64,000 nt of DNA from sequence record MK308676.1. One strand, given 5' to 3'. Numbering within the stretch: the first letter of the stretch is position 1; every line of letters starts with the position of its first letter. The notes under the pieces are model-generated. The model saw only the letters and a list, made by a program, of their open reading frames with translations, did not search any database and had not been told where the DNA came from. Made by a program: the position numbers and the translations under genes. Shown here piece by piece: positions 4,007 to 21,160 of the stretch.

Positions 4007-4636
4007 TTAGCCGATTAGCTCATTATACTGCGACGTTGGGTCGAGTAGTGAATCTTTAAGGAAGTGAGTGACAGTGTTGTAGGTATGGGCTACCGCTATC
4101 TTGTCGTTAAACGTAGGAGCGTAATCCATTTCCGCTGCTTCTACTGTGGTACGAGAAACAAGAATTTCGTTATCATCCTCATCGTACTCTTCCATCAGAA
4201 TACCGTTGGTGATTGTACGGTACTCGAAGCTACGGCCGAATGCTAGCGTTGGGGATGGGTTCACGTAAGCACCATCATAACCGTCAATGCGACCTTCGCG
4301 ATAAAGCTTGTTCAGCGCAGGATGTGCCATTACATAATGACGCATGCCTTCCGGACAGTGCTGTAGGTCTTCCATTGTTTCTAAGCGACAGATATCTGCC
4401 TCTTGCTTAAAGTGTTGGTTAACCATACCGCGAACTTGGTTAATGCGACGAGCGAACTCACCTGTTGTGAATTCTTGGTAACGCTGCTGTACTCGCTCTG
4501 CGATAGAAGCAGCATAACCTTGCGTCGATTGCACGAAGTTATGTACGTTCTCACGGATTTTATTTTGGAGTGCTTGCGATGGTCTGCCGAACAGACTTTG
4601 CATAGCTACGTCAGTATCCGCATAAATAGTTTGCAT
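4007..4636 (-). CDS. Conserved jumbo-phage hypothetical protein
   Basis: 209 aa, GGGAG RBS, ends DPTSQYNELIG. Confidence 0.6.
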   Translation of the reverse strand: MQTIYADTDVAMQSLFGRPSQALQNKIRENVHNFVQSTQGYAASIAERVQQRYQEFTTGEFARRINQVRGMVNQHFKQEADICRLETMEDLQHCPEGMRHYVMAHPALNKLYREGRIDGYDGAYVNPSPTLAFGRSFEYRTITNGILMEEYDEDDNEILVSRTTVEAAEMDYAPTFNDKIAVAHTYNTVTHFLKDSLLDPTSQYNELIG

Positions 4637-4724
4637 TGTATTTTCTCCCGTCTTACTCAGACTATAAGGTGGTTCAGTTAAAAGCCACCCTTTAGTAAGG
4701 CGACGTATGTTAAAGTTCGCAAAG

Positions 4725-4755
4725 GTTATATAGGTCAGACTTTCGCCTGACCTAT
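4725..4755 (-). promoter_or_regulatory. GAAA-tetraloop hairpin overlapping an early-promoter-like ACCTATATAAC
   Basis: Minus strand AUAGGUCAGGC-GAAA-GUCUGACCUAU (11 bp). Confidence 0.55.
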
Positions 4756-4759
4756 GTGC

Positions 4760-5935
4760 TTACTTTTTCTTTTTCTTAGACTTTGGAGCAGGGTGGTAAC
4801 TATCGACTATCTTCCGGAACTGGCTTATCTGGGCGTCACTCACCACATAGACGGGATGAATGCCTTTTACAGGTACGCGCATTTTCTTGAGATAGTCTAA
4901 GTCTTCCAGGAGTTCATCTGCGACGCCAATGTCATTACTTAGCTCATAGATGGCCTGGGAGAAAGCAGGTAGGTCTAAGTCCACCTCCAATTCTTCCACT
5001 AGGTCATGAATGGATTCGCAGTATTCCGGCTTAAGCGGGCGACCGTCCTCATCTGTGGTCACATAATGGTAAGGTCCCGTGGCGAAGCCTCCGACAAAAG
5101 TCTCGCCGCGCCAGACACAGATGCGGCCATCCGAAATGGTTTCGGTAAGGTCATCGTTGCCTAAACTTAGTTCCAACAAAGGGGACTGTATTAGCTTCTT
5201 AGATGCAGGGGCACCTATACCTTCGAACATCTTATTGATGAGGCTTTCCATATGGTTAACCTTTTCTAAGATTGCCGAATTGTCGTAGACTGTCTGTAGC
5301 TTAGGCCGGTGTAAGTCAGGCCTCTCCACATCTTCGTCCTTTTTAAAGGCGAAGTCACAAAGATTCCAATCGCCTCTAGGAGCCGATAGTTCTAACCTAC
5401 GATAGTCGCGCTGTTCTTCATAAGGTTTAGAGCGAGCAATGAGTTCCTGCACATTTACCGTATGCAACTCATGTGTTGGCACATGATAGTGAACCCCTGC
5501 CAATTGCCCATCTTCACTGACGAAGATAAGTTCTCGAGACTGGACGTCATAAACTCGACCCGTGTTGGCGCTTACGGCTAGGTTAGGGTACCCTGCAACA
5601 GCAACCGACTGAATCTCTTTATTCTTGTCGAACGGGTCAGGGAAAGATAAACCAGGTAGCTCCACGAAGTCCCTGTAGATGAACGACACATTGCCGGCAT
5701 CCACCGGGACGAAGTCTAGCTGTTGTGGCCGGATAATGAAACGACCGTAGTTATCAAAGTAGAAAACCTTTAGCCACTCTGGCGTGATGGTAATCTTCAA
5801 TGGGGCCACAGTGTAGCCTTTGATTTCCAGTTCAAATGGTAACGGTACTGATTTACCATGGAGACAATCATAGAGCTCGTATTCGTCGGCCGAATAGCGA
5901 TTGTCCGTAAACGGAATAACTTTAGGCAGGCACAT
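4760..5935 (-). CDS. Hypothetical protein with a degenerate NUMOD4-like segment
   Basis: GYPNLAVSANTGRVYD resembles NUMOD4; no intact HNH seen. Confidence 0.45.
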   Translation of the reverse strand: MCLPKVIPFTDNRYSADEYELYDCLHGKSVPLPFELEIKGYTVAPLKITITPEWLKVFYFDNYGRFIIRPQQLDFVPVDAGNVSFIYRDFVELPGLSFPDPFDKNKEIQSVAVAGYPNLAVSANTGRVYDVQSRELIFVSEDGQLAGVHYHVPTHELHTVNVQELIARSKPYEEQRDYRRLELSAPRGDWNLCDFAFKKDEDVERPDLHRPKLQTVYDNSAILEKVNHMESLINKMFEGIGAPASKKLIQSPLLELSLGNDDLTETISDGRICVWRGETFVGGFATGPYHYVTTDEDGRPLKPEYCESIHDLVEELEVDLDLPAFSQAIYELSNDIGVADELLEDLDYLKKMRVPVKGIHPVYVVSDAQISQFRKIVDSYHPAPKSKKKKK

Positions 5936-6389
5936 CTTTATACCTCTTAAAACTGTTGTGAAAGTAAATGTTATCAGGGACCTCTATAAAAGAAGTAAAG
6001 CCCTTCCATAACTCCAAAGGGGAATAACCATTGAGTCCATGACCGTCCGCTTTCTGGACGACAATGAACATTTTATCCGGATGTTCTCTAGCGCACTCGT
6101 AGAGCTCGACTATGTTCTCGCGGATTTGGTCCAAGCCCACTGAGCAAGGACCTTCTGTGGGATAGCGTATCTCTCTACCATCCGGTAGCTTCTCTACGAA
6201 GCCAGCTTTGAGGTTCTTGGTTACCAAGGCGTAGGTCTGACCCATAAGTCCCCGGCCTACTCCGTACTTGGCTCCATACCTTAAGGCTAACTTCGCAGCT
6301 CCCAAGCCATGGCGCCCCTCGGGGTTTGAACCGTAGACGAAGACCATGTTCGGTTTCAGTTTGGTAATGGTACCGTTCCACCATTTCAT
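5922..6389 (-). CDS. Macro-like phage protein (FVxGSNxxGxHGxGAA family)
   Basis: VFVYGSNPEGRHGLGAAKLA...GLMGQTYALVTK. Confidence 0.7.
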   Translation of the reverse strand: MKWWNGTITKLKPNMVFVYGSNPEGRHGLGAAKLALRYGAKYGVGRGLMGQTYALVTKNLKAGFVEKLPDGREIRYPTEGPCSVGLDQIRENIVELYECAREHPDKMFIVVQKADGHGLNGYSPLELWKGFTSFIEVPDNIYFHNSFKRYKDVPA

Positions 6390-6398
6390 GGACCCTCC

Positions 6399-6932
6399 TT
6401 ATTTGCGCTTAATGAGACCTTTCTCTTCTAACACCTTAAAGAACTTCTTCTGGTTATCGTTGGCTTCGCGGTTAGGGGAAGTGCCGATATAGCTATAGTA
6501 AGGATGCGGACATACCGTGCGTCCTGTACTGAAGAAGCGGCGCATCTCTTTTTCAATCTCCTGGTGGTTATTGTTCTTGACATGCATCATTGTTCCGCGA
6601 TAACCGGCGAGTTTAAGATGGCGATTAAACAAAGTCCACGCTACGTAAGTCGGAGCTCCATTGGCCATTTGGTTAAGGGTTTTACGGTTGACCGGCGTCT
6701 TATAGTCAACCATGTTGCGCATGCGTACTTGAAGAGGCTTACCTGTGGTCATGTGTAAAATAAGGCCTTTCAAAATCTTATCTTGGAGTTCTTCACTATA
6801 ATGTTGGCGCTTGACTAGCTCAATCATTCGATGATAGTATGCGACGTCCTTATTGTAGATATAATCTGCATAAGGGGTTGGGTTTACTTTATCGTGGTTT
6901 GACTTAGGCATTGTTCTGTCCTCTATGTTCAA
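6399..6932 (-). CDS. Basic hypothetical protein
   Basis: 177-aa ORF, in-operon. Confidence 0.6.
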   Translation of the reverse strand: MNIEDRTMPKSNHDKVNPTPYADYIYNKDVAYYHRMIELVKRQHYSEELQDKILKGLILHMTTGKPLQVRMRNMVDYKTPVNRKTLNQMANGAPTYVAWTLFNRHLKLAGYRGTMMHVKNNNHQEIEKEMRRFFSTGRTVCPHPYYSYIGTSPNREANDNQKKFFKVLEEKGLIKRK

Positions 6933-6982
6933 AAAATAAAAAATATGGTTTAGTGGAGAGTAGCCCTCGAAAGGGCTAACTC

Positions 6983-7336
6983 TTATTTTGCAAAGTATTC
7001 AAATTCGATTGTCTTAACGCCAGAGTGGCCTTCAATGCCACGCTCGAACTTCCATGGTTGGCTGTGTTCCTCTTCAATATGAGGCTCAGAGATGCGGATA
7101 TAGAAGCGACCTTTGGCGTCACGCGCTTCAAGCATTGCTTCCATATAAGCGATTGCGGTACGCTTAGTCTCAGGCTCAATCAGAATGATTGGAGTACCAA
7201 TAGGTAGTTGACGATGTTCCATAGTTAAGCGGTACTTTTCAGCAACACGCAGGATGATTGTTTCGTCGAACGAACGCTTACCTACTTCGTCTGCTTGAAC
7301 TTGCGGAATGCGAATAACTAGACCTGTTACTTTCAT
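6983..7336 (-). CDS. Hypothetical protein
   Basis: 117 aa, GAGGA RBS. Confidence 0.6.
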   Translation of the reverse strand: MKVTGLVIRIPQVQADEVGKRSFDETIILRVAEKYRLTMEHRQLPIGTPIILIEPETKRTAIAYMEAMLEARDAKGRFYIRISEPHIEEEHSQPWKFERGIEGHSGVKTIEFEYFAK

Positions 7337-7385
7337 GGGTAAATCCTCATTTTAGTTGAGTACATTATTGTACAATTGCATTAAG

Positions 7386-7405
7386 ACAATATAGGTTTTA
7401 CTTTT
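7386..7405 (-). promoter_or_regulatory. Early-promoter-like AAAAGTAAAACCTATATTGT
   Basis: Matches the recurrent motif. Confidence 0.6.
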
Positions 7406-7411
7406 GACTGG

Positions 7412-8002
7412 TTATTCTTCTTCCACAATGTCCCAAAAGAACTTTCTGTCTAAGAACGGTGTAAGAAAAACACTTACGACCGGATAACGGTAGTTCTCAA
7501 TTAGTTTAGTTTCTGGATGCTCTAGGTCGTCAAAGTCATAGTTCATGACTCTAGACCGTACGTTTAGTCCTCGCCATATATGGAGGACAAAGAAGAAGAA
7601 GAACGCATAGGTGCCCCAGATGCTGTTGTCGGCATTTGGCGGTGCGGCCGTCCCAGCCGTGCCATAGAAGCCTAGTCCCATTAAGTACGGCGTAGTGAAA
7701 TCTCTCACTTCGCCTATTTGGTAATAGTGGTACCCGGTGCGACCTACCGATACTGATTGTACGCCGAATCGAGTCTCTACTATCACATAATAATGGCAGC
7801 TACGACGAGTACACTCCTGGCCCTTATATGTAATTTTGCCGTACGTAGGGACACGAGATACCTGATAGGCATCGACCTGGACGGAGACATAAAACGCAAA
7901 GAGACACCACGCAATAACCCAGGTAACCGGGCGGTGCCAAAGAAAGCGTTTCTCTTTATTATAGATTCTAGTCTTCATCTTCATCGTCCTCAAAGTAGTC
8001 AC
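7412..8002 (-). CDS. Membrane protein (2 predicted TM segments)
   Basis: Hydrophobic stretches VTWVIAWCLFAFYV and YAFFFFFVLHIW. Confidence 0.6.
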   Translation of the reverse strand: MTTLRTMKMKTRIYNKEKRFLWHRPVTWVIAWCLFAFYVSVQVDAYQVSRVPTYGKITYKGQECTRRSCHYYVIVETRFGVQSVSVGRTGYHYYQIGEVRDFTTPYLMGLGFYGTAGTAAPPNADNSIWGTYAFFFFFVLHIWRGLNVRSRVMNYDFDDLEHPETKLIENYRYPVVSVFLTPFLDRKFFWDIVEEE

Positions 8003-8162
8003 TATACGGAACGACGTCTAAAGAAAAGCCAGGGAGCGACTGAGGAACATGGACCTCTAGTCCTTTACACCATCCTTTCATGAGGTCGGTGACCGGAGTA
8101 GAGTTTACCGGCTCAGTAATCTGGATACTCATATGTAACCTCGGTAGGTAGTATGCCGTCAC
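7968..8162 (-). CDS. Small hypothetical protein with acidic tail
   Basis: 64-aa ORF overlapping both neighbours. Confidence 0.45.
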   Translation of the reverse strand: MTAYYLPRLHMSIQITEPVNSTPVTDLMKGWCKGLEVHVPQSLPGFSLDVVPYSDYFEDDEDED

Positions 8163-8379
8163 GCATGCGTGAGGCGGTTATTAAAAGAAGAGTCGTATTG
8201 AGACCAATCATGTCTCCGGAGATTTTAGCCCATAGTGGGTTGTTCGTTTGAACGTCCCACTTGAGCATGTTAAGATGCATCTCCCAAAGTTCCATTTCTT
8301 TCTCTGTGACTCTCGTTGTTAAAGCAGTGCGGCGAATCGACCGGTACTTTAAAGGCGGTACGTTAAAGAGATGCTTCAT
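8113..8379 (-). CDS. Hypothetical protein
   Basis: 88-aa ORF, in-operon. Confidence 0.55.
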   Translation of the reverse strand: MKHLFNVPPLKYRSIRRTALTTRVTEKEMELWEMHLNMLKWDVQTNNPLWAKISGDMIGLNTTLLLITASRMRDGILPTEVTYEYPDY

Positions 8380-8445
8380 AGTTTCGTCTCGCTAAAAATA
8401 CAATAAGGAAAGGCAAAGGACCGAGCGGTCCTTTGCTTATAACGT

Positions 8446-9000
8446 CTACGGGCGTTTGTTCGGGTCGTACATGTGGTAGTCTAGGTCGTACGCCTTAGGC
8501 ATAGTCTCGATTTGTTCACCGTCTAGCTTCACAACTAGGTCTTCCATGTGCACTACGATGTTGCCTTCAATCTCAGAGAAAACACCGCGGAGCTTAAAGC
8601 TTGCAGTGACAGCTTTACCTTCGACGATTGCTTCCGAAGATAGACTATGTTTCGCTTCCAGCGAATGGCAGCGCGGTGCCTCAGAGGAAGGGGAGAACTT
8701 GAAGTTTAACTCTTTTGGTAATTGAAAGCCGATTGAGTCGAACCCGGGCAGGTTCGCTTCAAAGTAAACGCCTGTCACAAAGATGTCAGGAGAAACATAG
8801 CCCATATCGAAACTTGGTTGGCCTCGGTCTGAAAGACTCAAAAGGTCTAAGCGTCGACCGAACAGGATGGGCGCCGTTTGGAACTGCTCTTCGTCGCTAA
8901 CCTTTACGGTTTTAAGGCAAGAGGCGAATAGGTGGTCTTTATTGCGGTCGTTTAAAACGGGATACAGTTGCATTTCTTTGTCCTCAAAGTCGATTAACAT
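8446..9000 (-). CDS. Stand-alone domain resembling the internal domain of the phiKZ-type major capsid protein
   Basis: TAPILFGRRLDLLSLS ... AYDLDYHMYDPNKR resembles recalled MCP motifs. Confidence 0.5.
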   Translation of the reverse strand: MLIDFEDKEMQLYPVLNDRNKDHLFASCLKTVKVSDEEQFQTAPILFGRRLDLLSLSDRGQPSFDMGYVSPDIFVTGVYFEANLPGFDSIGFQLPKELNFKFSPSSEAPRCHSLEAKHSLSSEAIVEGKAVTASFKLRGVFSEIEGNIVVHMEDLVVKLDGEQIETMPKAYDLDYHMYDPNKRP

Positions 9001-9191
9001 TAGATTGTGATGGGGGTTTATTTTTTACCAGCGGGAGGCAGGAGTTTCTTAGATGGACTGTAGGAGTCAGCTACAAAACTTACTTTCTCACGGGAACGCT
9101 TAGGGGCGAAAGTAAGATAAGGCTGTCCTTCGACGGTTTTAATCGAAAGAATGCCGTCCGGAGCGCCTTACAGTTATGGTAAAAACCTTTA
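9001..9191. ncRNA. Candidate structured RNA or leader
   Basis: Several nested helices (see findings); no ORF. Confidence 0.35.
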
Positions 9192-10079
9192 CTATTTATC
9201 TTCGTCCACCATCCGGTCATGGACACTCTGAAGCCAATCGATGAGCTCTTTAACTTCTTTCTTATCTAGGTCTTCAGAGAAGTGGTTATCGCAATCTTCC
9301 TGAATTTCCAATAGCTCCGGCTTAGCAGGGTCGAAAGAAAAGCTTACGATTGAAGAATAATCGCGATGGTTTCTACCGTATTCCTCTTCTCTCTTTTTGA
9401 TAAATCGGACCGTTTGATACGCAACGGTATAGCCGATTACTTCAGCTTCCAGCGGAGAGTCCAAATAGAACTCCGTAGTAAAGTAAGGCGTGAAGACGGA
9501 GCTCTTGGTTTCTAGAGTCGCCTGAATTCCGAGACGTATAGACATAGAAGCAGTCATGCCGTCTTCTGGTCGTATGCAGCCAAAGACGTCAGGTAGAGGC
9601 CTGCCGTCAGATGTGACATATCGGAACTTGAGAGGTAGACCAACCGACATTTCGAGGTGGTTTAAGTTCGATTCTTCTCTAATCGACACAGTGCGGCCGT
9701 TGGTGACCGAAACCGCTAAAAACGCTTCCGTTTGTTTGTTGGGGTCGCGTAGCTTAACAAGGTAAGACGTGATGTGGAATTGTTCTACATCCACTTCGTC
9801 GGTTTCCTCGAGGAGGTCTAGACTGCCCTTACCGTTTCTGCCTAAAGCGATGAGGTCCACAGGGGCGCCAGCCTTAATATAGTCGGTATCACTGACGAAC
9901 AGTTCTGCCATCTCTTCAGAGCGACGAACGATTACGTGGTCCGGGCGGAGCTGTTCAATGTGTGCTCTAAAAGCCGATTCGCTCTTAACGCCCAGAGGGT
10001 TGTTAATATGGAGATGATTTGACATTTCGTAATCCTCTTTTGAAAATGAGATAAAAAGTGGAGACCCGAAGGCCTCCAC
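9192..10079 (-). CDS. Second stand-alone MCP-domain-like protein
   Basis: KAGAPVDLIAL..LEETDEVD and AEVIGYTV resemble recalled MCP motifs; likely start at 10025. Confidence 0.5.
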   Translation of the reverse strand: MEAFGSPLFISFSKEDYEMSNHLHINNPLGVKSESAFRAHIEQLRPDHVIVRRSEEMAELFVSDTDYIKAGAPVDLIALGRNGKGSLDLLEETDEVDVEQFHITSYLVKLRDPNKQTEAFLAVSVTNGRTVSIREESNLNHLEMSVGLPLKFRYVTSDGRPLPDVFGCIRPEDGMTASMSIRLGIQATLETKSSVFTPYFTTEFYLDSPLEAEVIGYTVAYQTVRFIKKREEEYGRNHRDYSSIVSFSFDPAKPELLEIQEDCDNHFSEDLDKKEVKELIDWLQSVHDRMVDEDK

Positions 10080-10080
10080 T
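10053..10080 (-). terminator. Intrinsic terminator after beta' exon 2
   Basis: AGUGGAGGCC-UUCG-GGUCUCCACU followed by UUUUAU. Confidence 0.75.
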
Positions 10081-10085
10081 CGACT

Positions 10086-10274
10086 TTATTGCAGTGTAAC
10101 TTGCTCTGCCGCACACCAAGCATATTGGTTTGCAACTGTAACAGCAGGCATCTTGATGTTGTTCTTAATAGAACCAGGGTTTTGCGTAGAGTGAATATCG
10201 TACTGAGGCTCCAACATACTGAAGCGCTCTGCCATGTATTCGTCTAGTGCTAACGACCCCGTCATCATATCTCC
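10086..10274 (-). CDS. rpoC: nvRNAP beta' N-subunit, exon 2 (GDMMTG..., 62 aa)
   Basis: GGA GAT ATG ATG completes NADFD+GD in frame, directly after the terminal G of the intron. Confidence 0.85.
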   Translation of the reverse strand, partial: GDMMTGSLALDEYMAERFSMLEPQYDIHSTQNPGSIKNNIKMPAVTVANQYAWCAAEQVTLQ

Positions 10275-12096
10275 CGTACCTTCAGCCAGTTCGTTAGACT
10301 GACCCGCAGCATGACCTGCTAAGCTCTAGGGTTTCCCACTAGACGACTCACCTTCGTGAGAAGGGCATTTGACTGCCGTCGAGACTATATCATCGGTTCC
10401 TCTCAAGGACACCGCCTCATGCTTCGCCCGCACTTGCTGGGCTAGCGCTAACTTATTCCGCTATTAGGATAGCATCTGTTAGCATTAGTCGTTGAACCTG
10501 CCACAGTTTAAAGTAGCTCGGCTGCTGATTACCAATTCCATGTTCCCTTAGGAGTGTCATCGCGACAGGTCCATAGGACATCTCTTATGTTCTTTCTGTT
10601 TTCACAGCCTTTCCATCTGAACTTTCGTTCTCTGTTTCGGCCATAAGAGCTTTACGGATTTCCAGCAATTCAAAAGGTTTTACTTCGACTTAGATTTCCA
10701 GCTTCTCAATCTTTTTATGTTAATGTTAAAGCGCCCAAGCAAAGGGACGTTTTTCTTTTCAGCGTTTCTTATTGTAGACTCAGCTATGCCTATTTGCTTA
10801 GCAACTTGCTGTATGGAAGTGCCTACGTAGATTTCTTTAGTTAAGGGGTCCTCTACAGTAACGATGGCCGAAATGCGACTAGCGTCCTTCAGGATAGCGC
10901 CTTCCGCTTCTGTAAAGTCTGGCCATTCAGGTTTGTCCAAAACGGGACGAACCACGTAGCCTCGGCACGGGACATCGTCGAAGGTACTCTTCATCCTGGA
11001 AACATTCGACTCCACTGTCCCTATGTATCTGGCAGCTGCTCCGGAACTTTCAAAGATTTTTACTTCTCCGAAACTTTCCGGGCGATAGCTTTTTACCATA
11101 CAGGACGCGCACATACCAGAGCGACCAACCTGTTTTTCTAGCTCCGACGCCACCGGTACCGGCAATCCGCTGTCTTCATAGGAAAAAGCATATGTGCCCT
11201 TTTCATTTAGCTGATAGACGGCTTCTTCTGCGGCTCTTCTAGAAAGGCGGTCCACGCTATTGAAGTGCATGCCTGTGGCTTTAGCGGCCACCGTAGAGGA
11301 ACTATATATTTCCTGAGTGTTTTCTCTAACGTCAAAAACACAAACTCTTCTACCCTTCCCTTTTCTTGAGATGTTCTTTTCTTTCCCGGCGTTCTTGCTC
11401 TGAGTAAGCCATTGAAGGTTACTGAGCCCATCATTAAAGCCATCAGTATCCTTATGGTCACACTCTAAAACATCCACGTTAGCCGGATAGTCTTTAAAAG
11501 CCAGTAGTTTCGCTCTGCCTCTCCCAAGTAACAGATGTCGCCCCAAGTCGTCTAAAATACTGGCCTTCATATAACGACCATGTATGCTAAATGAATGGGT
11601 CTTTCCGGTTGCTCCATTCAGCAATAGACCTTCTTTAGACAGTCCGTATTTCGTACAGCCTGGAATCCTAAAGTAATTTGGATTTTTTCTAAGCGGCAGG
11701 GGTTTGGTAAACCCATACGTTAGATTACCTGGATGTAGATTATTACGGTCACCGTCTATGAACAATGGGCGTATTTTTCTTACTTCTTCCAGAGAAAAAG
11801 CGAAGAGTTTCTTCCATGCCCAGACCATAACTTTAGCGATGGCCACTTCCACACGGCCATTATCGCTTTTTAAGAATACGCTTTTGTTTCTTCCATTGAC
11901 TTTGCGGACACATTTTGCTTCCGTTCCGTCACTAGAATAAACATTACCCTTTTTGTCTAGCCAGAGACCATAGTTTGGAATCTCGACTCGACTAACATTA
12001 ACATAACCACTTAAACGTTCTCTTTTCATAGCTTATCTCCTCTATGATATCCGTTTTTATGGTTTATTTTGATTTAAAAAACTTACCCTTCTTTTA
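10275..12096 (-). mobile_element. Group I intron (1822 nt) with homing endonuclease
   Basis: Exon ends in U and intron ends in G; P AAUUGCUGGAAA (~10659-10670), Q AAUCAGCAG (~10522-10530), R UUCAACGACUA (~10486-10496), S GAUAUAGUC (~10383-10391); IGS GUCGAAGU 10682-10689. Confidence 0.9.
10680..12029 (-). CDS. Intron-encoded HNH homing endonuclease
   Basis: CDHKDTDGFNDGLSNLQW HNH motif; degenerate upstream copy FIDGDRNNLHPGNL; NUMOD4-like and NUMOD1-like HTH repeats; GAGGAG RBS. Confidence 0.85.
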   Translation of the reverse strand: MKRERLSGYVNVSRVEIPNYGLWLDKKGNVYSSDGTEAKCVRKVNGRNKSVFLKSDNGRVEVAIAKVMVWAWKKLFAFSLEEVRKIRPLFIDGDRNNLHPGNLTYGFTKPLPLRKNPNYFRIPGCTKYGLSKEGLLLNGATGKTHSFSIHGRYMKASILDDLGRHLLLGRGRAKLLAFKDYPANVDVLECDHKDTDGFNDGLSNLQWLTQSKNAGKEKNISRKGKGRRVCVFDVRENTQEIYSSSTVAAKATGMHFNSVDRLSRRAAEEAVYQLNEKGTYAFSYEDSGLPVPVASELEKQVGRSGMCASCMVKSYRPESFGEVKIFESSGAAARYIGTVESNVSRMKSTFDDVPCRGYVVRPVLDKPEWPDFTEAEGAILKDASRISAIVTVEDPLTKEIYVGTSIQQVAKQIGIAESTIRNAEKKNVPLLGRFNINIKRLRSWKSKSK

Positions 12097-13434
12097 ATCG
12101 AAATCTGCGTTAGGTCCCACCAGTGCAAGGACCGAGAGTGCTATCTCGCATTCGCTTAGGCCCACGATTCTTAATCCTTGCGTGCTAGACCTTGCAAGAC
12201 TAGGATAACGAGTCAGAGCACACTTAATGCCGCCGCCCTTACGCTTACGTGTACGCAACGTAGAAGGCAGTTCTTTAAGTGTAGGGTTACCAGCCGCATC
12301 TTTTACTACGATGGTCTGAGCAACGCTCTCAGGAGTCGGAGGAGTATCATCGATAAGTTCTTCCAGGACATCTACAAGTAGAGGGTCCCAATCCGTAGCA
12401 TGTTGTAGTACGTAGGCTTGGGCCTGAGCGTGACTAAACTTATGTTTCCGGATGAGCTTAGCGATGACTAATGGTTCCAGACAAGTTAACATCTGATGGT
12501 ACGGTACGAGAATAGTATCGTACTCATGAGGACGATGATAAGACGTGATGATGTTACGGAACGAGTAGTTCATGCGCGTACCGAAGTTCACACGGCGTAA
12601 CCAACCAGACTTAGACGATAAGTTGTTTTCGATAACGTCTTTATAGTAGTTGGTTAAGTCTACCATGATGTTAGTAAAGCGAGTCTCTAATCGCTTCACG
12701 TTTATCATGCCCATTGTGCCGGCTGCGGCAAAGATAGCTTCCATTGCAGAAGCCATTGTCTTATCGTAGTAGTTACCGTAAGCTGTTGACTCGATGGCAA
12801 ATGCTACTTTAGACGGGATTGGAATGTGCTTAACGAATAGATGCTCACGGTACTCTTCCACAAACTCTTTCAGTTCTTGGCGTTTCTGCACGGAGGCAGT
12901 CTGGCGTAAAGCAACTTCTAGAATCTTGTCGAACTCTTCTTTTACATTAGAGAGGCCACGTTTAAGACCTAGCTTCTTGAAGTGCTCTACAATAGAGGTA
13001 CCTTTCTTCTTAGACTCATCTGGGTCAGGCAGCTTAGGGTCCATTGCCCACTGCAAGCCATCGAAGCCACGGTTATCCTTTAAGCGTTCGCTTAGGAAAA
13101 TCCAAGGCAGTGGTGCTAAGAAGTAATCGATGCCGCGAGGAACAGAAATCCAGATTTCCGATTCGATTGCTTGGTTGTGGTGAGATACCACTTTGGTGTT
13201 ACAGTGTTCACAGATAACACCGAGGTTAACTGCTTCTTTTGTCTTACGACAACCACACTGAGGCACAGTAGCTAAAACATCCGAAGACTCATACTTAGTC
13301 ACCGTCAATGACTCAAGTAGCTTTCGGTCTTCTTCGGTTTCAAGTTTCAGTTCGTTTACGATGACCGGAGGGTTTTCCATTGAAGATAAACGCCAGTCCA
13401 AGTTACCGAATTTTAGAACCTGTGTTCCTAACAT
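12097..13434 (-). CDS. rpoC: nvRNAP beta' N-subunit (phiKZ gp55-like), exon 1
   Basis: Zn-finger CGC..CEHC, KSGWLRR..FGTR, TRYPSL, ends GPNADFD. Confidence 0.9.
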
Positions 13435-13462
13435 AGGGTCGTGCTCCTTTGTTATGTTTAAC

Positions 13463-14233
13463 TTACTGTTCGTACTTAGTGTTTTGGCTTACGTCGCCAA
13501 CTTCACTCTTAGGGGGAATATAGGACAAACCGTTCTTTGAAACGTACTCCGTAATCTCCTCAAGAGTGTCGAACTTCTTACCACCCAGGTGCTTAGGGAT
13601 AATCTCCATAAACTCCACTAGGGCTCTTTGGTCCGCTACGGCAGCACCTACGTCATCTAACGCGAAATGTGTTGACTGGGTGCGACTGAGGCGGTTAGGT
13701 AGGATTTTAGAAGGATACATCATCGTACGAGTAGACGAGGTATCCGCTACCTGGTGGCCTAGGATTAAACCTAAGCGAGGCATCTGCGCATTGATGAAAG
13801 ACTTATCGAAGTTCACGGACTTCCCGTGGACGATAATGACGTACTTCGCTTTGGCGTCATAAGCCGGTAGTTTACCGTCAACTAGGAACTCTCGATGGTT
13901 CGCAGTAAAGTAGCTAGTTAAGATAAAAATGATGCGGTCTTCTACTTCGTGAAGAGGTAGCCGCTCGCGTGTCTCCCATTCTACGTCAAAGCCGTTTTCA
14001 ATATGGAACTGCACAGTGCCTTCGTCAGAACGCGCCATTTCTTCAGCTGTAGGCTGAACCATATAGTCGAAGCTGACCTGTTCTTCTAAGTCTTCCGATA
14101 GAATTGTTCCTGCCACTTGGACTAGTGGGTAATGATTACAGCCAGCAACATAAGTGCCGTCCTCTAGCTTAACTGGGTAGTTGAAACCCATTGTCTCTGA
14201 ATCCAGGGACAGATATACGATGGTCTTTGCCAT
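13463..14233 (-). CDS. Oligoribonuclease-like DEDDh 3'-5' exonuclease
   Basis: LDSETMG, HGKSVNFDKSFI, DTSS, THFALDDV motifs. Confidence 0.75.
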   Translation of the reverse strand: MAKTIVYLSLDSETMGFNYPVKLEDGTYVAGCNHYPLVQVAGTILSEDLEEQVSFDYMVQPTAEEMARSDEGTVQFHIENGFDVEWETRERLPLHEVEDRIIFILTSYFTANHREFLVDGKLPAYDAKAKYVIIVHGKSVNFDKSFINAQMPRLGLILGHQVADTSSTRTMMYPSKILPNRLSRTQSTHFALDDVGAAVADQRALVEFMEIIPKHLGGKKFDTLEEITEYVSKNGLSYIPPKSEVGDVSQNTKYEQ

Positions 14234-14270
14234 ACTAACCTCTTATAAAGGAAAAAGAAAATATAAGTAA

Positions 14271-14302
14271 ACTGAGGCTACGGCGTGAACCGTAGCCTCA
14301 GC
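14271..14302 (-). terminator. Terminator after chimallin
   Basis: CTGAGGCTACGG/CCGTAGCCTCAG 12-bp stem followed by a U-rich tail on the minus strand. Confidence 0.75.
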
Positions 14303-14332
14303 TAATTACTTACTTACGTTTTTTAATGCAAC

Positions 14333-16237
14333 TTAAGAAGTCACACCGTAACGGTATTGAGAACGACCTGCTTGGTATGCACCTTCACCGTATACACCAC
14401 GTTGTGATGTTGCAGTTTGGAATGCTTGACCAGGCTGGAACGCTTGACCAGCGTTGAAGCCGTGTACGCCTTGAGTGTTGTCGTAGTCAGTGTCAACCAG
14501 ACCTTCAGTGTTTAGAACCATGCCGCTGTTGATAACTGCTTGCATGAACGCTGGAAGGAAATCTGGAGAGTAGAAGAAACGGTCGTAGATACCGTCAATG
14601 TCTGCATTAACTACTTGCTTAAGGATTTCACGACGAGTGTGGATGTTCACAAGACCTTGTGGACCATTACAGCCGCCAGGTACTAGAGACTGCTGGAACT
14701 CACGCATGCGAGTGCCTGCTTCTGCACCGAACAGTTGTAGCATCTGTAGCTGACCACATTCACGTAGGTCGTGAGTGTTACCTTCTTTATCTGTGTAAGT
14801 ACCAGCATGAACAGCAACAGCTTGAGGCTGTAGTACTGGACGTGCTTCGTTACCCCAGATTGGAAGGAAGTGTCCGCCTAGGAATTGGTCTACTAGAGCT
14901 ACGAATTCTGCGTTTGCTTGTAGACGGTCTTGGTCATCACCTAGAACCGATGCAACTAGAAGTTCGTAAATCCATGCAGTACGACCACCACGCAGTACGT
15001 CGAATGCCACAGTGATTGTGTCATGTACGTTACGTGCAATGTACTGGTCAAGTGATACGCGGCCAGTTGTGTCCATACCCATAGATACAGATTTGTCTAG
15101 CTCAATTTCACATGGTGCCCAATCTTCAGCGCCAGTCATACGACCGTCCCACTGATAGTTAAGAACGCCTAGTGAAGGTTTGCCACCAAAGTTACGACGG
15201 AAGACCTGCTTGTAGTTCTGGCCAGACGCTTGCTGTGCAAGTGCTAGTAGGCTGAACAGTACAGTTTCTTCAGACTCGTATGCTTTAGCAGTGTGTGGGT
15301 CAATACCTTGAGCCACTGATTGAACTAGTAGAGGGTGGTACGCACGACGTACGAATTCACCGTTTTCTAGACGCACTGCATCGTTAGATGGAGCGAATAC
15401 GAAATCTACGTAAGTTTCAGCTTGGGCTAGAGTGATACGACGCTCACGGTTGTTACGAGAACGTTTAGCGTTACCGCGACGAGTACGTGCTTCACCAACA
15501 GTTACTGTAGAAGTAATGTCAGTGTAAGTTGGGTTACCTTCTACGTCAGATGTAGTTGAACCTGGGTTCACTTCATGACCGATTTCGATAGTAAGACCAC
15601 GGCTCACGATGTCTGGTGCGCTTACGGTAATGTTGCTGTTTAGAGACATTAGGTTACGTTCAGCTGTTGCGTATAGACAGCCTAGGTAAGCTTCATTCGT
15701 TAGGTCCATTGATGCACGAGCAGTCATGAAGCCGTTTTGAATGTAGTCTACAGTAGCACCGGTACGACGTACAACTTCGTCTGTGATAGCGTTAACAAGA
15801 ACGGCATCCCAGAACTCTGAAGTATCTGCGTCAAGAAGGATTGGTTGGTTTTCAACGATGATTTCTTCGCCTTTAACCGCGCCTTCATATGCACCTTCTT
15901 CGATTAGGATGGTGTAGAAACCTTTAGTCTCACCTACAGTGTTGTAGGCTACGATTGCAGGTACACCTACCTTCATGTCATCGTCGATTGCGATGAACTG
16001 AAGACCTAGTGCGTTGCGAGAAGCTTTCTTCTCAGTAGCAGCACGCTCATTAAGGAACGCTATGCCAGCTGTGATAGCTTCGTTGGTGCGACCAGTGAAG
16101 TCAGAAGCAGAGCCTAGAACTTGGTCTAGGAAGTTGCCGCCCATCGGTGCAGACTGTTGTGCAGCTGCGCCTTGCTCAGGTGCGTTAGTTTCAGTTTGTG
16201 CTTCTTTCTTAGCTTTGTTACCTTTAGGGTCGAACAT
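14333..16237 (-). CDS. chmA: Chimallin, phage nuclear shell protein
   Basis: 634 aa, disordered N/C termini, strong codon bias, canonical position between DNA pol/gp52-like and beta'; ends RYG; early promoter upstream. Confidence 0.8.
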   Translation of the reverse strand: MFDPKGNKAKKEAQTETNAPEQGAAAQQSAPMGGNFLDQVLGSASDFTGRTNEAITAGIAFLNERAATEKKASRNALGLQFIAIDDDMKVGVPAIVAYNTVGETKGFYTILIEEGAYEGAVKGEEIIVENQPILLDADTSEFWDAVLVNAITDEVVRRTGATVDYIQNGFMTARASMDLTNEAYLGCLYATAERNLMSLNSNITVSAPDIVSRGLTIEIGHEVNPGSTTSDVEGNPTYTDITSTVTVGEARTRRGNAKRSRNNRERRITLAQAETYVDFVFAPSNDAVRLENGEFVRRAYHPLLVQSVAQGIDPHTAKAYESEETVLFSLLALAQQASGQNYKQVFRRNFGGKPSLGVLNYQWDGRMTGAEDWAPCEIELDKSVSMGMDTTGRVSLDQYIARNVHDTITVAFDVLRGGRTAWIYELLVASVLGDDQDRLQANAEFVALVDQFLGGHFLPIWGNEARPVLQPQAVAVHAGTYTDKEGNTHDLRECGQLQMLQLFGAEAGTRMREFQQSLVPGGCNGPQGLVNIHTRREILKQVVNADIDGIYDRFFYSPDFLPAFMQAVINSGMVLNTEGLVDTDYDNTQGVHGFNAGQAFQPGQAFQTATSQRGVYGEGAYQAGRSQYRYGVTS

Positions 16238-17693: not shown

Positions 17694-18815
17694 TTAACGC
17701 TTTATGACGGCGACCGGTTCTCTTTGCAATATAGAAGATACGTACTTAACATGTTCTTCTAACGTTGTTCCTTCCGGCATTATTCTGGTCTCCGTATAAC
17801 CGACACCAAAGCTTTCTTTAGAAAGAGTAGGATACGGCATAGAATCTAGAACTAGTTTCTCTTCACTGGGGTCTTTTGTCGACCACACGTATGCTTTGTT
17901 TAGGCCGAGATGGCCCATTCGGCTTTTTAATGAGGATGTAAATCCCAACTTGAATGCACCCGCACCATCGATTGGCATCAGGTAGACGACAGCGATACCT
18001 TCGGCCTTACAGCATTCCGGGATTACCCGCAAATAGAGGTCTCTTCCGCTATAAGTGTTTTCACCATGACACGAACACGTTAACTTGACCGTTCCTTTAT
18101 CTTTAACGAAGCTATAGGTGTGACCAGTAATGGCCGTCGATTGGGTCAGGCGAAACTTAAGGGCAGATTCTGTTATTTCTAGATGCAGTCCCCTATTCGC
18201 GTTACCGCACGTTTGACAACCAGTACCATGGTGGACTAGGTTACTGATTATCGGGTCCCATTCTCTACCGCAGGCCTTACACTTACAATGGATGGTATCC
18301 GTGTTCTTCTTGCCGTCTAGCGAAGAATGCTCGATGCCATCCTCTTTTAGTCTGGCCTTTAGGTCATCGTATTTACCGTCTTGGTAAAAGCGCTTCTCTG
18401 CCATCTTCTTGTAGCCACATTCAGGACAGCCTGTCTTGCGCATAACCGATTCAGCTTGAACCCACCACTCGTGCTTACATGTCTTACAGACGGCCCAACC
18501 GTGCTCCTTGAGACCTTTGTACTCGAACTTACTTAGGTCGATGTTAGGGTCTCGTTTCTTAGTCTCGGTAATGAACTGCTTTTCCGTAATCTTGCGGCTC
18601 TCGTTCTGGTTACGGTACTTACACTCCTTACAGCCTCGTCCCTGCATTAAGTTGCTAGGGCGAATTTCCCATTCGTAGCCACAGCCTTCTACACCGCAGT
18701 AAACTGTAGAGGCTACCTTGTCTCCGAGATACTCGAACTTGTCGAGCATAATAGTGGAGTCCGGATGTCGAGCTCGGAACTTCTCGACAAACTTCTCCGT
18801 TGACATTCTTGCCAT
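17694..18815 (-). CDS. Free-standing putative homing endonuclease (zinc-ribbon repeats plus GIY-YIG-like C-terminal domain)
   Basis: Repeated C..C-HEW-x-GC..C units; VVYLM...FKLGFT...RM; likely start MARMS at 18815. Confidence 0.7.
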   Translation of the reverse strand: MARMSTEKFVEKFRARHPDSTIMLDKFEYLGDKVASTVYCGVEGCGYEWEIRPSNLMQGRGCKECKYRNQNESRKITEKQFITETKKRDPNIDLSKFEYKGLKEHGWAVCKTCKHEWWVQAESVMRKTGCPECGYKKMAEKRFYQDGKYDDLKARLKEDGIEHSSLDGKKNTDTIHCKCKACGREWDPIISNLVHHGTGCQTCGNANRGLHLEITESALKFRLTQSTAITGHTYSFVKDKGTVKLTCSCHGENTYSGRDLYLRVIPECCKAEGIAVVYLMPIDGAGAFKLGFTSSLKSRMGHLGLNKAYVWSTKDPSEEKLVLDSMPYPTLSKESFGVGYTETRIMPEGTTLEEHVKYVSSILQREPVAVIKR

Positions 18816-18843
18816 TGTGTTTTCCTTATAAGGATAAAAGATT

Positions 18844-18900
18844 GTTAGAGACAGACTTTCGCCTGTCTCTAACGGTTGCATGCACAATGGCTATATAGGT
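18844..18900 (-). promoter_or_regulatory. Early-promoter-like ACCTATATAGC followed by a 13-bp GAAA hairpin
   Basis: GUUAGAGACAGGC-GAAA-GUCUGUCUCUAAC. Confidence 0.55.
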
Positions 18901-18911
18901 TTTACTTTAGT

Positions 18912-21080
18912 TTAAATGTCTACGGATAGAGTTGAATCCTCCAACCATCTGTCTGCTTCCTCCTCGGAAATGTCGTCACTGAAGAAATGAGTGAATTTAG
19001 TATTTGCAATGTTCATGTAAATGCCGTTACATGCCAGATAGAAAGGCTGCATTAGAGACATTAGGATTTTGCGCTCATCCATTACGGCGATGATTTCTTT
19101 CGGTATCTTTCCGCCTTGAAGCTGGTCAACCGGAGCCAGTAACTGAGTCATGGCTTTCTTATCGCGACTATACATGAATTCTTTCAATTCACTCGTAACG
19201 TTCCCATCAAGCGATTCCGCCCACTCATTAAAGTCTTTCTCTTTGCCTAACGTCACGTTGACCTTTAATGCGTCCGCTGGAGTTTGTTCAACTCTACCGT
19301 ACTTAGACCCCAAGACGATATTCCATAAGTCTTTACAGACTATCTGAGTTGCTCTGTCTTCAGCGGCGTACGTTTGAGGAGTCTTAATCTGTTCCGTTTT
19401 AAAGTACGTCGCATCACCGTCTCTCAAACGACCAAGAATACGGTGTTCTAATTTGGCCAAATAGGCGGCAGGCTCCATGGGACTAATCCCGCCCTCAATC
19501 GACGGAGCATTAAGAAGATACCAGTAGAACTTTTCTGTTTCTCTTCTCACTGGGCTCGGCAACTTGGAGCTCTTTAACTGCACTCCTTTCACTTCTAGTT
19601 CGGATTCAGGATATACATTCCCTTCACATGCCGATATATCCATGATGTAGTGTTTTGTGACCGTTGTATTAACCTGAGCCTTAGAGTAGAACTCTGACTT
19701 CATAGAAAGTCGGAACAGTTGGTCTTTATGAACGCCCATCTGACCGGACATGAGAGCTAAGGTATGTACGATAAGCTGAGACGTTAGGTATGATGTGATT
19801 GCGCCTGCTTGTACAGCACGGTGAGAGAAATCAATCTTACCAGTAAACCACTTAACCTGACGTTGAGTAGAGAAGATAGATGAGTCGGTATCTGAACCCA
19901 CAACCACACGACGTTTGATTGTAGGTAGAGAATGGATTGACCCTGGCATAATCTTAGTTGAGATGAACGCATCGATAAATACTTGGTACTGGTCGAACGT
20001 TTCCACAACTTGTTTGATGTAGCCAGTCCAGATAGCATACTCGTCTGGAGTTAAGTCCTTCGCTTTCTTACCTGCCATGAAGTCCGCAGATAACAGAGAC
20101 GCTAGTGCCACATCATCGTCTGACGCACCGCCTGCATATTTCTTTTGTTCTTCTGGGTCAGTAAGAGGAGTAGGGCGACGACAAAGGATATCGTACAGTT
20201 GACGAATAGCTTTATCGTTCGTTTCATGAAGTGCGTTTAAATCACCAATGAAACTAAATGCTGCACGCTCAATAGGTGTCATGTTCTCTACCATTCTGTG
20301 AATGAGAGTTTCAGCATGCTCATCTTTCCAATATAGGCGAGATGAACTTAGGATTTGTTCGTAGACATATTCAACCGATGGCGGAGTGATGTCGAACAAC
20401 ATTACGGCTTCTTCTACCTTAACAAGGTCTGCCTGCGACGTCACATAAACCATGTTCTCCATCGTCACCTCTGGGCTGAAGTAATGACGGTTAGAAGCCA
20501 TGAATTTCTCGTTACATGCGTTAGCGTATGAAGTGATAGCACGACATACAGAAGTTAATGACGTGTGAGATGAAGCGTAGTAAAGTGGGTTGTATGGCGA
20601 ACTCAGTGCACCTGAGATAGAGTTGTTACGGATTTTAAAGTTAGCCTGTAACAGGTTACAGAACGTAGCATGTTCATGGTTACCATCCATGAAAGCTGAC
20701 TGGCCTTCTTTCTTAACTGCTTTACGCATCGAAAGGTTATTTGAAATGAAGCCAGATAGGAATGAATCTTCTACGTCTGGGTTACAGTAAGCGATTAAGT
20801 TAGGCGCTAGGATATGGTTCTTAGCAATTACCCAATCTAGGTAAGAAAGTAAATCAACCTTACGCTTAGTACGGTCTCCGCGTGGGGCGCGCATGAGAGA
20901 GTGTAAGTCAGGTGATTTAGGACGCCAATCGGTTAGCATCTTTTCATCGACATAGCCTGTCGTCTTTTCTAGGTCGTCGCCTGTACCTAGGTGAAGTGCC
21001 ATAGACATGGACTTCTTATAATTACCAACGATATCGTAATCACGACCGTAGTAATCTAAATCTTTTACAAAAGCGGACAT
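18912..21080 (-). CDS. Family-B DNA polymerase, polymerase subunit (phiKZ gp50-like)
   Basis: KIRNNSISGA and VGSDTDS motifs, LEVKGVQLKSS; start MSAFV after AGGAG. Confidence 0.85.
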   Translation of the reverse strand: MSAFVKDLDYYGRDYDIVGNYKKSMSMALHLGTGDDLEKTTGYVDEKMLTDWRPKSPDLHSLMRAPRGDRTKRKVDLLSYLDWVIAKNHILAPNLIAYCNPDVEDSFLSGFISNNLSMRKAVKKEGQSAFMDGNHEHATFCNLLQANFKIRNNSISGALSSPYNPLYYASSHTSLTSVCRAITSYANACNEKFMASNRHYFSPEVTMENMVYVTSQADLVKVEEAVMLFDITPPSVEYVYEQILSSSRLYWKDEHAETLIHRMVENMTPIERAAFSFIGDLNALHETNDKAIRQLYDILCRRPTPLTDPEEQKKYAGGASDDDVALASLLSADFMAGKKAKDLTPDEYAIWTGYIKQVVETFDQYQVFIDAFISTKIMPGSIHSLPTIKRRVVVGSDTDSSIFSTQRQVKWFTGKIDFSHRAVQAGAITSYLTSQLIVHTLALMSGQMGVHKDQLFRLSMKSEFYSKAQVNTTVTKHYIMDISACEGNVYPESELEVKGVQLKSSKLPSPVRRETEKFYWYLLNAPSIEGGISPMEPAAYLAKLEHRILGRLRDGDATYFKTEQIKTPQTYAAEDRATQIVCKDLWNIVLGSKYGRVEQTPADALKVNVTLGKEKDFNEWAESLDGNVTSELKEFMYSRDKKAMTQLLAPVDQLQGGKIPKEIIAVMDERKILMSLMQPFYLACNGIYMNIANTKFTHFFSDDISEEEADRWLEDSTLSVDI

Positions 21081-21120
21081 TGTAGTTCTCCTTTTATCTA
21101 ACAGATTGACCGAGCCTGTA

Positions 21121-21160
21121 AAAAAGAAAAAACACTCCACTGACCCGAAGGCCAGTGGAG
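21121..21160 (-). terminator. Intrinsic terminator upstream of the DNA polymerase gene
   Basis: CUCCACUGGCC-UUCG-GGUCAGUGGAG followed by a U tract. Confidence 0.75.

Follow-up and report, generated by a model that had tools for sequence, protein, structure and literature searches.

Two adjacent genes of Vibrio phage vB_VmeM-Yong, here called A and B, appear to encode free-standing versions of one part of the major capsid protein (MCP), namely, the insertion (I) domain of phiKZ-type MCPs. Both genes lie on the minus strand of a 64,000-nucleotide stretch of sequence record MK308676.1 (the window, meaning the whole stretch that was analyzed; record coordinate = window coordinate + 62000), and every gene of the region is called "hypothetical protein" in the GenBank record. 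We read A and B as anciently diverged, free-standing I-domain paralogues and propose that they may be soluble accessory proteins acting off the capsid; we give this reading a probability of about 0.6. Yong (290 kb; host, Vibrio mediterranei) is a phiKZ-like, nucleus-forming jumbo phage, as judged from neighboring genes that include chimallin, an RNA polymerase beta/beta-prime piece, a family B DNA polymerase and, further along, terminase, tail sheath, and other genes. A first-pass annotation of the window had described two tandem copies of an MCP internal domain that lack the HK97 core and sit outside the head module, beside beta-prime and chimallin. Both open reading frames (ORFs), with the peptides and coordinates that it quoted, are present on the minus strand, and the placement is also as described: the Yong MCP gene is ~55 kb away, and the beta-prime piece and chimallin are adjacent (Table 1).

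In the phiKZ capsid structure, the I domain comprises residues 248 to 472 of the MCP, gp120, between linkers at residues 205 to 247 and 473 to 484 (PDB 8Y6V; PMC11297242). It is an elaboration of the HK97 E-loop and the outermost part of the MCP, rests on the neighboring subunit, and forms I:I dimers at (quasi) two-fold axes that connect capsomers (PMC11297242). The same I-domain roles are seen in the Goslar capsid structure (PMC13742148).

A hidden Markov model (HMM) built from 15 diverse phiKZ-type MCPs was run with filters off against all 744 six-frame ORFs of at least 60 amino acids (aa) in the whole Yong genome. The Yong MCP headed the list, followed by A (E = 3.5e-5) and then B (E = 0.03), and noise started at E = 0.9. 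The matched HMM columns overlap (237 to 292 for A and 274 to 338 for B), and the joint span, 237 to 338, corresponds to the I-domain linker and the I domain. Since two adjacent genes are the best non-self matches and fall on overlapping columns, a chance origin of this signal is hard to accept. The Pfam family PhiKZ_MCP (PF25620) matched residues 6 to 58 of A (profile positions 141 to 198; E = 1.4e-4, 20.6 bits). With an HMM built from the I-domain slice only, the scores of A, B, and P0003 (the sole relative of B, described below) were 21.7, 12.0, and 15.3 bits, respectively, compared with maxima of 7.7, 5.8, and 8.2 bits for 2,000 composition-matched shuffles of each protein (0/2000 reached the real score in all three cases), and reversed sequences scored about -2. 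Addition of two sequences from Pseudomonas phage Phabio to the HMM raised the score of A to 24.1 bits. In hhalign comparisons with the full MCP profile, A had a P value of 1.3e-4 (149 columns) and the B family one of 7.4e-4; against the I-domain-only profile, the values were 1.5e-5 for A (probability, 79.7%; 149 columns) and 2.1e-4 for the B family (46%). The C-terminal two-thirds of the domain, taken alone and compared with shuffles, also gave a signal (P of ~0.002 for A, 0.024 for B, and 0.037 for P0003), with collinear alignments. Pairwise BLAST matches were not significant; they paired residues 5 to 58 of A with gp120 residues 246 to 304 (E = 0.05) and residues 68 to 97 of B with gp120 residues 291 to 321 and the equivalent stretch of the Yong MCP. 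The likeness to the phiKZ-type MCP internal domain that the first-pass annotation had pointed out is thus beyond chance, by ORF rank, shuffles, and hhalign, and the domain in question is the I domain.

When 15 I domains were aligned with A, B, and P0003 in MAFFT, the landmark motifs appeared in order: an invariant Pro, T-x-P-L-K-x-G-x-x-x-D-L, (E)TDxxD (ETDEVD in B and ETDTVD in the Yong MCP), G-x-F-S-x-x-x-G-N (GVFSEIEGN in A and GLFSYVQGN in the Yong MCP), and G-Y-x-L. A carries all of the landmarks in order up to NxNxR, and the whole protein appears to correspond to approximately one I domain (gp120 residues ~246 to 468), ending at the N-x-N-x-R boundary motif. In this motif order and apparent span it resembles the I domains of chimallivirus MCPs (phiKZ gp120, Goslar, and PhiKp24; PF25620), although it is ~40 residues shorter. 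The core of B would cover the same region of gp120 and contains the invariant Pro, T-D-Y-I-K-A-G-x-x-V-D-L-I, E-T-D-E-V-D, G-x-x-x-x-E-D-G, and V-I-G-Y-T-V; its last motifs are weak (P of ~0.02 to 0.04). The statistically supported part of B comprises residues 45 to 112 of 277, and the remainder is weak yet collinear. Beyond the core, B has a short N-terminal lead and a conserved 70-aa acidic helical C-terminal extension that MCP I domains lack. In contrast to the gp120, Goslar, and PhiKp24 MCPs, A and B have no N-arm, P domain, A domain, or C-arm, share only 15 to 20% identity with them, and have sub-gathering Pfam scores. Pfam and MCP-HMM scans found no match to the HK97 core (N-arm, P domain, and A domain) in either ORF, as the first-pass annotation had claimed, and at 175 to 277 aa, the proteins are far shorter than MCPs (~707 to 760 aa). 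On this profile and motif evidence, A is very probably an MCP I-domain homolog, and B is probably one, with somewhat less confidence. We also considered whether A and B could be exons or fragments of one broken MCP gene and rejected this; they match the same MCP region rather than consecutive ones, and no P- or A-domain remnant lies nearby.

Several observations weigh against this homology and against the model built on it. The Pfam score of A is below the 27-bit gathering cutoff, B has no Pfam PhiKZ_MCP match at E ≤ 1, and significant similarity is confined mainly to the end of the linker and the initial third of the I domain (~55 to 70 residues). Searches of PDB sequences with A (phmmer) and the B-family profile (hmmsearch) returned no matches at E ≤ 10, and searches of 5.8 billion proteins with A, B, and a profile of the I domain plus A and B returned only the proteins themselves and P0003. 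The single-sequence AF2 model of A had a pLDDT of 43, with beta strands in residues 73 to 167, and its Foldseek matches to the PDB were meaningless; ESM Atlas queries by features and by structure likewise gave poor, uninformative models. Identity to the Yong MCP's own I domain is just 15 to 19%, which makes conserved docking on Yong's own capsid uncertain and weakens models that call for precise self-docking or a sequence-specific epitope. Finally, no significant similarity links A with B (BLASTP E = 0.45; hhalign P = 0.1). In the tree, they occupy very long, poorly placed branches and pair neither with each other nor with the Yong MCP. Of the "two tandem copies" proposed earlier, the adjacency of two I-domain-like genes therefore stands, whereas their description as tandem duplicates is unsupported, because A and B show neither significant mutual similarity nor pairing in the tree. 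They are also not strictly tandem: a decayed small gene lies between them, and B has extra N- and C-terminal parts. Their origin may have been an ancient intragenomic duplication or a capture.

B is a selected, functional gene. Its only relative among 5.8 billion proteins, P0003 (278 aa, from a 1.1-kb Logan contig of SRR31214396), is 52% identical end to end, and by the Nei-Gojobori method, the pair has a pS of 0.73 (near saturation), a dN of 0.39, and a dN/dS ratio of ~0.15, which shows that B is under purifying selection. The best-conserved part is the C-terminal 60 residues (66% identity). The B frame has a coding score of +0.29 bits/codon; Pfam, PHROGs, and PADLOC returned nothing for B. 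Although the longest ORF extends to 10079, the start codon is probably ATG 10025, since an AGAGGA Shine-Dalgarno sequence lies 8 nt upstream, GenBank and the only homolog agree on this start, and a frame extended upstream to the GTG would run into a strong hairpin of terminator-like form (10081 to 10056). We observed separately that the C-terminal 70 residues of B (window 9195 to 9416) form an acidic amphipathic helix with a faint, subthreshold likeness to the T4 y05I-like C-terminal domain (Pfam PF24448, E = 0.13), a likeness that recurs in ESM Atlas rows.

A, an ORFan, has a good coding signal. It had no relatives beyond the four Yong isolates in word-seeded searches of 5.8 billion proteins or in an exhaustive phmmer search of 1.84 billion representatives, and the ~4-kb stretch around A and B is 100% identical among those isolates (MK308674-7; 278 to 290 kb). 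Its codon score is phage typical in its own frame (+0.32 bits/codon) and negative in the five other frames. The true start is probably ATG 8973, which is preceded by a GAGGA Shine-Dalgarno sequence and is the GenBank start. One phmmer match to A, the repetitive Ig/cadherin-like protein P0004, was spurious; its score was the same 54-residue match summed over repeats.

The 190-bp spacer between B and A showed no coding signal in any frame, and it contains the remnant of a small gene that has lost its start (ATG to ATA) and suffered a frame-shifting 13-nt deletion. The intact 59-aa ORF is found downstream of P0003 on the contig of that relative (L012:848-1027). Terminator-like hairpins (10081 to 10056 and 8436 to 8413) flank the pair, so B and A would form one bracketed unit; the Shine-Dalgarno sequence and ATG of B lie at most 30 nt past the upstream hairpin.

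A and B belong to a Yong-lineage-specific accessory island whose insertion separates nvRNAP beta-prime from a conserved phrog_3254 gene (4007 to 4636). In the closest isolated relatives (pir03, sm033, and BONAISHI), the gene order is PolB, a reverse gene, chimallin, beta-prime, the phrog_3254 gene, and an SbcD-like nuclease; these syntenic relatives retain the chimallin-beta-prime arrangement without A and B, and no ORF of their corresponding stretch showed I-domain likeness (best E = 0.8). Nothing ties A and B to chimallin beyond their proximity to it. A single island gene has a family match, and a PADLOC scan for defense and antidefense families found none. Scans of IMG/VR and JGI metagenomes with A, B, the B alignment, the beta-prime piece, and the DNA polymerase detected no related loci, and MCP scans of metagenomes found only three relatives, at 62% identity. 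One of these, JGI contig Ga0194138_10000001 (215 kb, near genome length), comes from a Yong relative with a 62%-identical MCP and, by synteny arithmetic, probably ends before the A/B region.

A clearer example of a separately encoded I domain exists in Phabio. When 50,697 phage records were searched by tblastn for the gp120 I-domain slice, a second I-domain match appeared only in Phabio (two records) and in no other phage record. The protein, gp274, contains an I domain in residues 109 to 315 (111.5 bits with the I-domain HMM; 104.9 bits with Pfam PhiKZ_MCP, profile positions 145 to 364, a profile start close to that of the A match at 141), is 29% identical to residues 230 to 458 of the Phabio MCP, and has a 108-aa N-terminal extension and no HK97 core; it ends in '...IVGYELDATFTN'. 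By these profile matches, gp274 is an unambiguous stand-alone I domain. Its gene has small hypothetical genes as neighbors and lies well away from the head module. The protein is named "major head protein" in RefSeq and "hypothetical protein" in GenBank, and it lacks the "virion structural protein" note that many Phabio genes carry. In the tree, gp274 stands beside the phiKZ/201phi2-1/Phabio MCP clade (support, 0.95) and so derives from a duplication within that lineage.

Like A and B, gp274 is a free-standing I domain without the HK97 core, encoded by a separate, lineage-restricted gene in an accessory region off the head genes, and both gp274 (G-Y-x-L...T-N) and A end at the domain boundary. 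Unlike A and B, it is far less diverged, is present in a single copy, and carries the long N-terminal extension. BLASTP found no direct similarity of gp274 to A or B (E ~1), and this, with the different tree positions, makes independent origins likely. Phabio also has a stand-alone ORF that resembles the MCP A domain rather than the I domain and lies among head-module genes, gp192 (139 aa; L031:27665-28084), which matches gp120 residues 547 to 683 (tblastn E = 2e-7) and Pfam PhiKZ_MCP profile positions 482 to 583 (E = 2.8e-4). Taking Yong A and B, Phabio gp274, and gp192 together, we infer that stand-alone MCP domains are a recurrent, sporadic feature of chimalliviruses. I-domain slices searched against PHROGs matched only the full-length MCP family, plus one marginal match (E = 0.01), and we found no description of stand-alone I domains in the phiKZ and Goslar structure papers or in full-text literature searches. 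Duplication of a capsid gene followed by specialization is familiar from T4, in which the vertex protein gp24 and gp23 are full-length MCP paralogues. Those proteins keep the whole HK97 fold and build the capsid, whereas A and B keep the insertion domain only.

How might such proteins work? A partial duplication or capture of the I-domain segment of the MCP could have given rise to A and B, with the beta-rich fold of the I domain kept for protein binding. A and B would act away from the capsid, either by occupying I-domain docking surfaces on the MCP or on capsomers or, alternatively, by mimicking the exposed capsid surface toward host or rival-phage factors. A possible effect would be to cap or modulate the contacts between capsomers, either Yong's own or those of a rival phage in the same cell, and the conserved acidic C-terminal helix of B might add an interaction site. 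Because the known job of the I domain is docking on MCP surfaces and I:I pairing, binding or mimicry is the most economical mechanism; an off-capsid mimic or binder of the MCP is the likeliest reading overall, but we advance the specific idea of MCP-surface binders or mimics only tentatively, and it is rather less likely to be right than wrong. An accessory, nonvirion role, as opposed to a core structural one, is probable on broader grounds: A and B lie behind the terminator that ends the nvRNAP/chimallin block of early/middle-type genes and not among late head genes; they are absent from close relatives and sit in an ORFan neighborhood beside a mobile intron; Phabio gp274 has no virion note; and the best-conserved part of B is its non-I-domain tail. 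Among the three roles suggested in the first-pass annotation (decoys for capsid-sensing immunity, adaptors for capsid docking at the phage nucleus, and assembly modulators), this context gives preference to none.

A more sweeping version, which we consider improbable, holds that stand-alone I domains would be a recurrent, independently evolved class of chimallivirus accessory proteins, soluble mimics of the outer capsid surface. As such, they could exert a dominant-negative block on I:I joining of capsomers in co-infecting rival jumbo phages or could be decoys for host factors that recognize assembling capsids, and A and B would be carried in a mobile, competition-related neighborhood, like the adjacent intron-borne homing endonuclease.

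The first alternative to accessory I-domain paralogues is that A and B are minor capsid (decoration or cement) proteins, i.e., free I domains that would bind the capsid exterior as virion components. That insertion domains and separate decoration proteins can be interchangeable in other phages (P22-like phages and T4) speaks for it. So does the behavior of the I domain itself, a built-in cement between subunits and capsomers in phiKZ and Goslar (PMC11297242, PMC13742148). However, the two genes follow nvRNAP/chimallin-type genes in an accessory island of ORFans, the MCP gene and the other head genes are elsewhere (the former 55 kb away), the closest relatives manage without them, gp274 is not noted as a virion protein, and the divergence from the Yong MCP is extreme, so that we regard this alternative as unlikely.

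Slightly less likely again is the idea that A and B are decoys for capsid-sensing host immunity, soluble I-domain look-alikes that would titrate a sensor of the exposed MCP surface. An accessory, lineage-specific island is a typical location for host-interaction genes, expression before the late genes is plausible from gene context, and the I domain lies outermost on the capsid (PMC11297242). Against these points, PADLOC found no defense or antidefense family match, and a sequence-specific epitope would not survive a divergence that leaves 15 to 19% identity to the Yong I domain. To our knowledge, no capsid-sensing system has been reported for the Yong-host pair, which also counts against decoys.

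Alternatively, the genes, mainly A, could be functionless, decaying relics of a partial MCP duplication. A has no relatives beyond four near-identical isolates, decay is plain in the small gene that separates B from A, and the island consists of ORFans. Yet the frame of B is intact at 52% identity, with a dN/dS ratio of 0.15, and A keeps a 175- to 184-codon frame with phage-typical codon usage in that frame only, a Shine-Dalgarno sequence, and a terminator. Divergence of this extent would have destroyed an unselected frame, and we therefore think that relics are improbable. Least probable of all is a chance or convergent resemblance, in which unrelated beta-rich proteins would have one short motif in common with the MCP. 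In its favor, every score falls short of the curated thresholds, only ~55 to 70 residues align significantly, the reverse searches were empty, and the A model has a pLDDT of 43. Against it, two adjacent genes are the best non-MCP matches of 744 ORFs and hit the same HMM region, 0/2000 shuffles equal the real score for A, B, or the independent P0003, the C-terminal parts give a separate collinear signal, and A, like gp274, stops at the boundary of the domain.

What sets phiKZ-type capsids apart from HK97 is the I domain, a surface module that ties subunits and capsomers together. Here, this known capsid domain would be encoded separately, twice in one Vibrio phage and, in an independent parallel, once in a Pseudomonas phage, in a free-standing, selected, accessory context. 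Stand-alone I-domain genes are a rare kind of capsid-gene offshoot, and capsid genes would appear to shed single domains that are afterwards maintained under selection. Such genes may offer a handle on how assembly of giant capsids is controlled in the cytoplasm while the DNA sits in the phage nucleus, on host sensing of jumbo-phage capsids, and on interference among co-infecting jumbo phages. They are also an annotation trap, as the misleading RefSeq label "major head protein" for Phabio gp274 illustrates.

Table 1 Features of the A/B region, with comparators (window coordinates unless another record is named)
Feature	Coordinates	Strand	Length or extent	Match or remark
Gene A	8446-9000 (longest ORF); 8446-8973 (with probable ATG)	-	184 aa; 175 aa	GenBank QAX96055.1
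Gene B	9192-10025	-	277 aa	GenBank QAX96056.1; longest ORF, 9192-10079
I-domain-like core of B	9417-9944	-	B residues ~28-203	
Decayed small-gene remnant	9042-9199	-		Between B and A; 59-aa ORF in relative's contig L012
Terminator-like hairpin	10056-10081	-	11-bp stem	T-run; between beta-prime exon 2 and B
Terminator-like hairpin	8413-8436	-		T-run; directly after A
Yong-lineage-specific accessory island	4700-10085	-	~5.4 kb	B, A, and about seven ORFs
Island gene	5922-6389	-		phrog_2072, function unknown, E = 1e-27; only island family match
Island ORFans	8113-8379, 7968-8162, 7412-8002			No match in Pfam, PHROGs, or PADLOC
Further island ORFans	6983-7336, 6399-6932, 4760-5935			No match in Pfam, PHROGs, or PADLOC
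Group I intron	10362-10756	-		Rfam RF00028, 53.8 bits, E = 4.6e-12
HNH/NUMOD1 homing-endonuclease ORF	10680-12029	-		Intron borne
RNA polymerase beta/beta-prime piece (nvRNAP beta-prime)	12094-13434	-		phrog_2987, E = 2e-91
Chimallin	14333-16237			phrog_4795, E = 1e-31
Divergent family B DNA polymerase	18912-21140			
Yong MCP	Record 13118-15241 (outside the window)		707 aa	Pfam PhiKZ_MCP, 592.5 bits
Phabio gp274	NC_062582.1 210664-211611		315 aa	YP_010348243.1

Upstream of the island, the beta-prime gene is itself interrupted. The nvRNAP beta-prime piece ends in "...NADFD," and a 60-aa ORF (10086 to 10268) resumes with "(GD)MMTG..."; GenBank lists the pieces as separate hypothetical proteins. 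The small ORF (exon 2, about 10274 to 10086) is homologous to the C terminus of the uninterrupted beta-prime proteins of sm033 and BONAISHI, and for this reason, we conclude that the catalytic NADFDGD motif is split by a mobile group I intron (window 10086 to 13434). The pir03 record likewise divides beta-prime into two pieces, of 451 and 125 aa, separated by small ORFs (L028:6968-9817), a layout that suggests an insertion there too, at this site or close to it. Next to the DNA polymerase gene is another HNH-type endonuclease ORF (17694 to 18887, minus strand; phrog_681/559, with a DUF4379 zinc finger), a probable further mobile element within the replication and transcription block.

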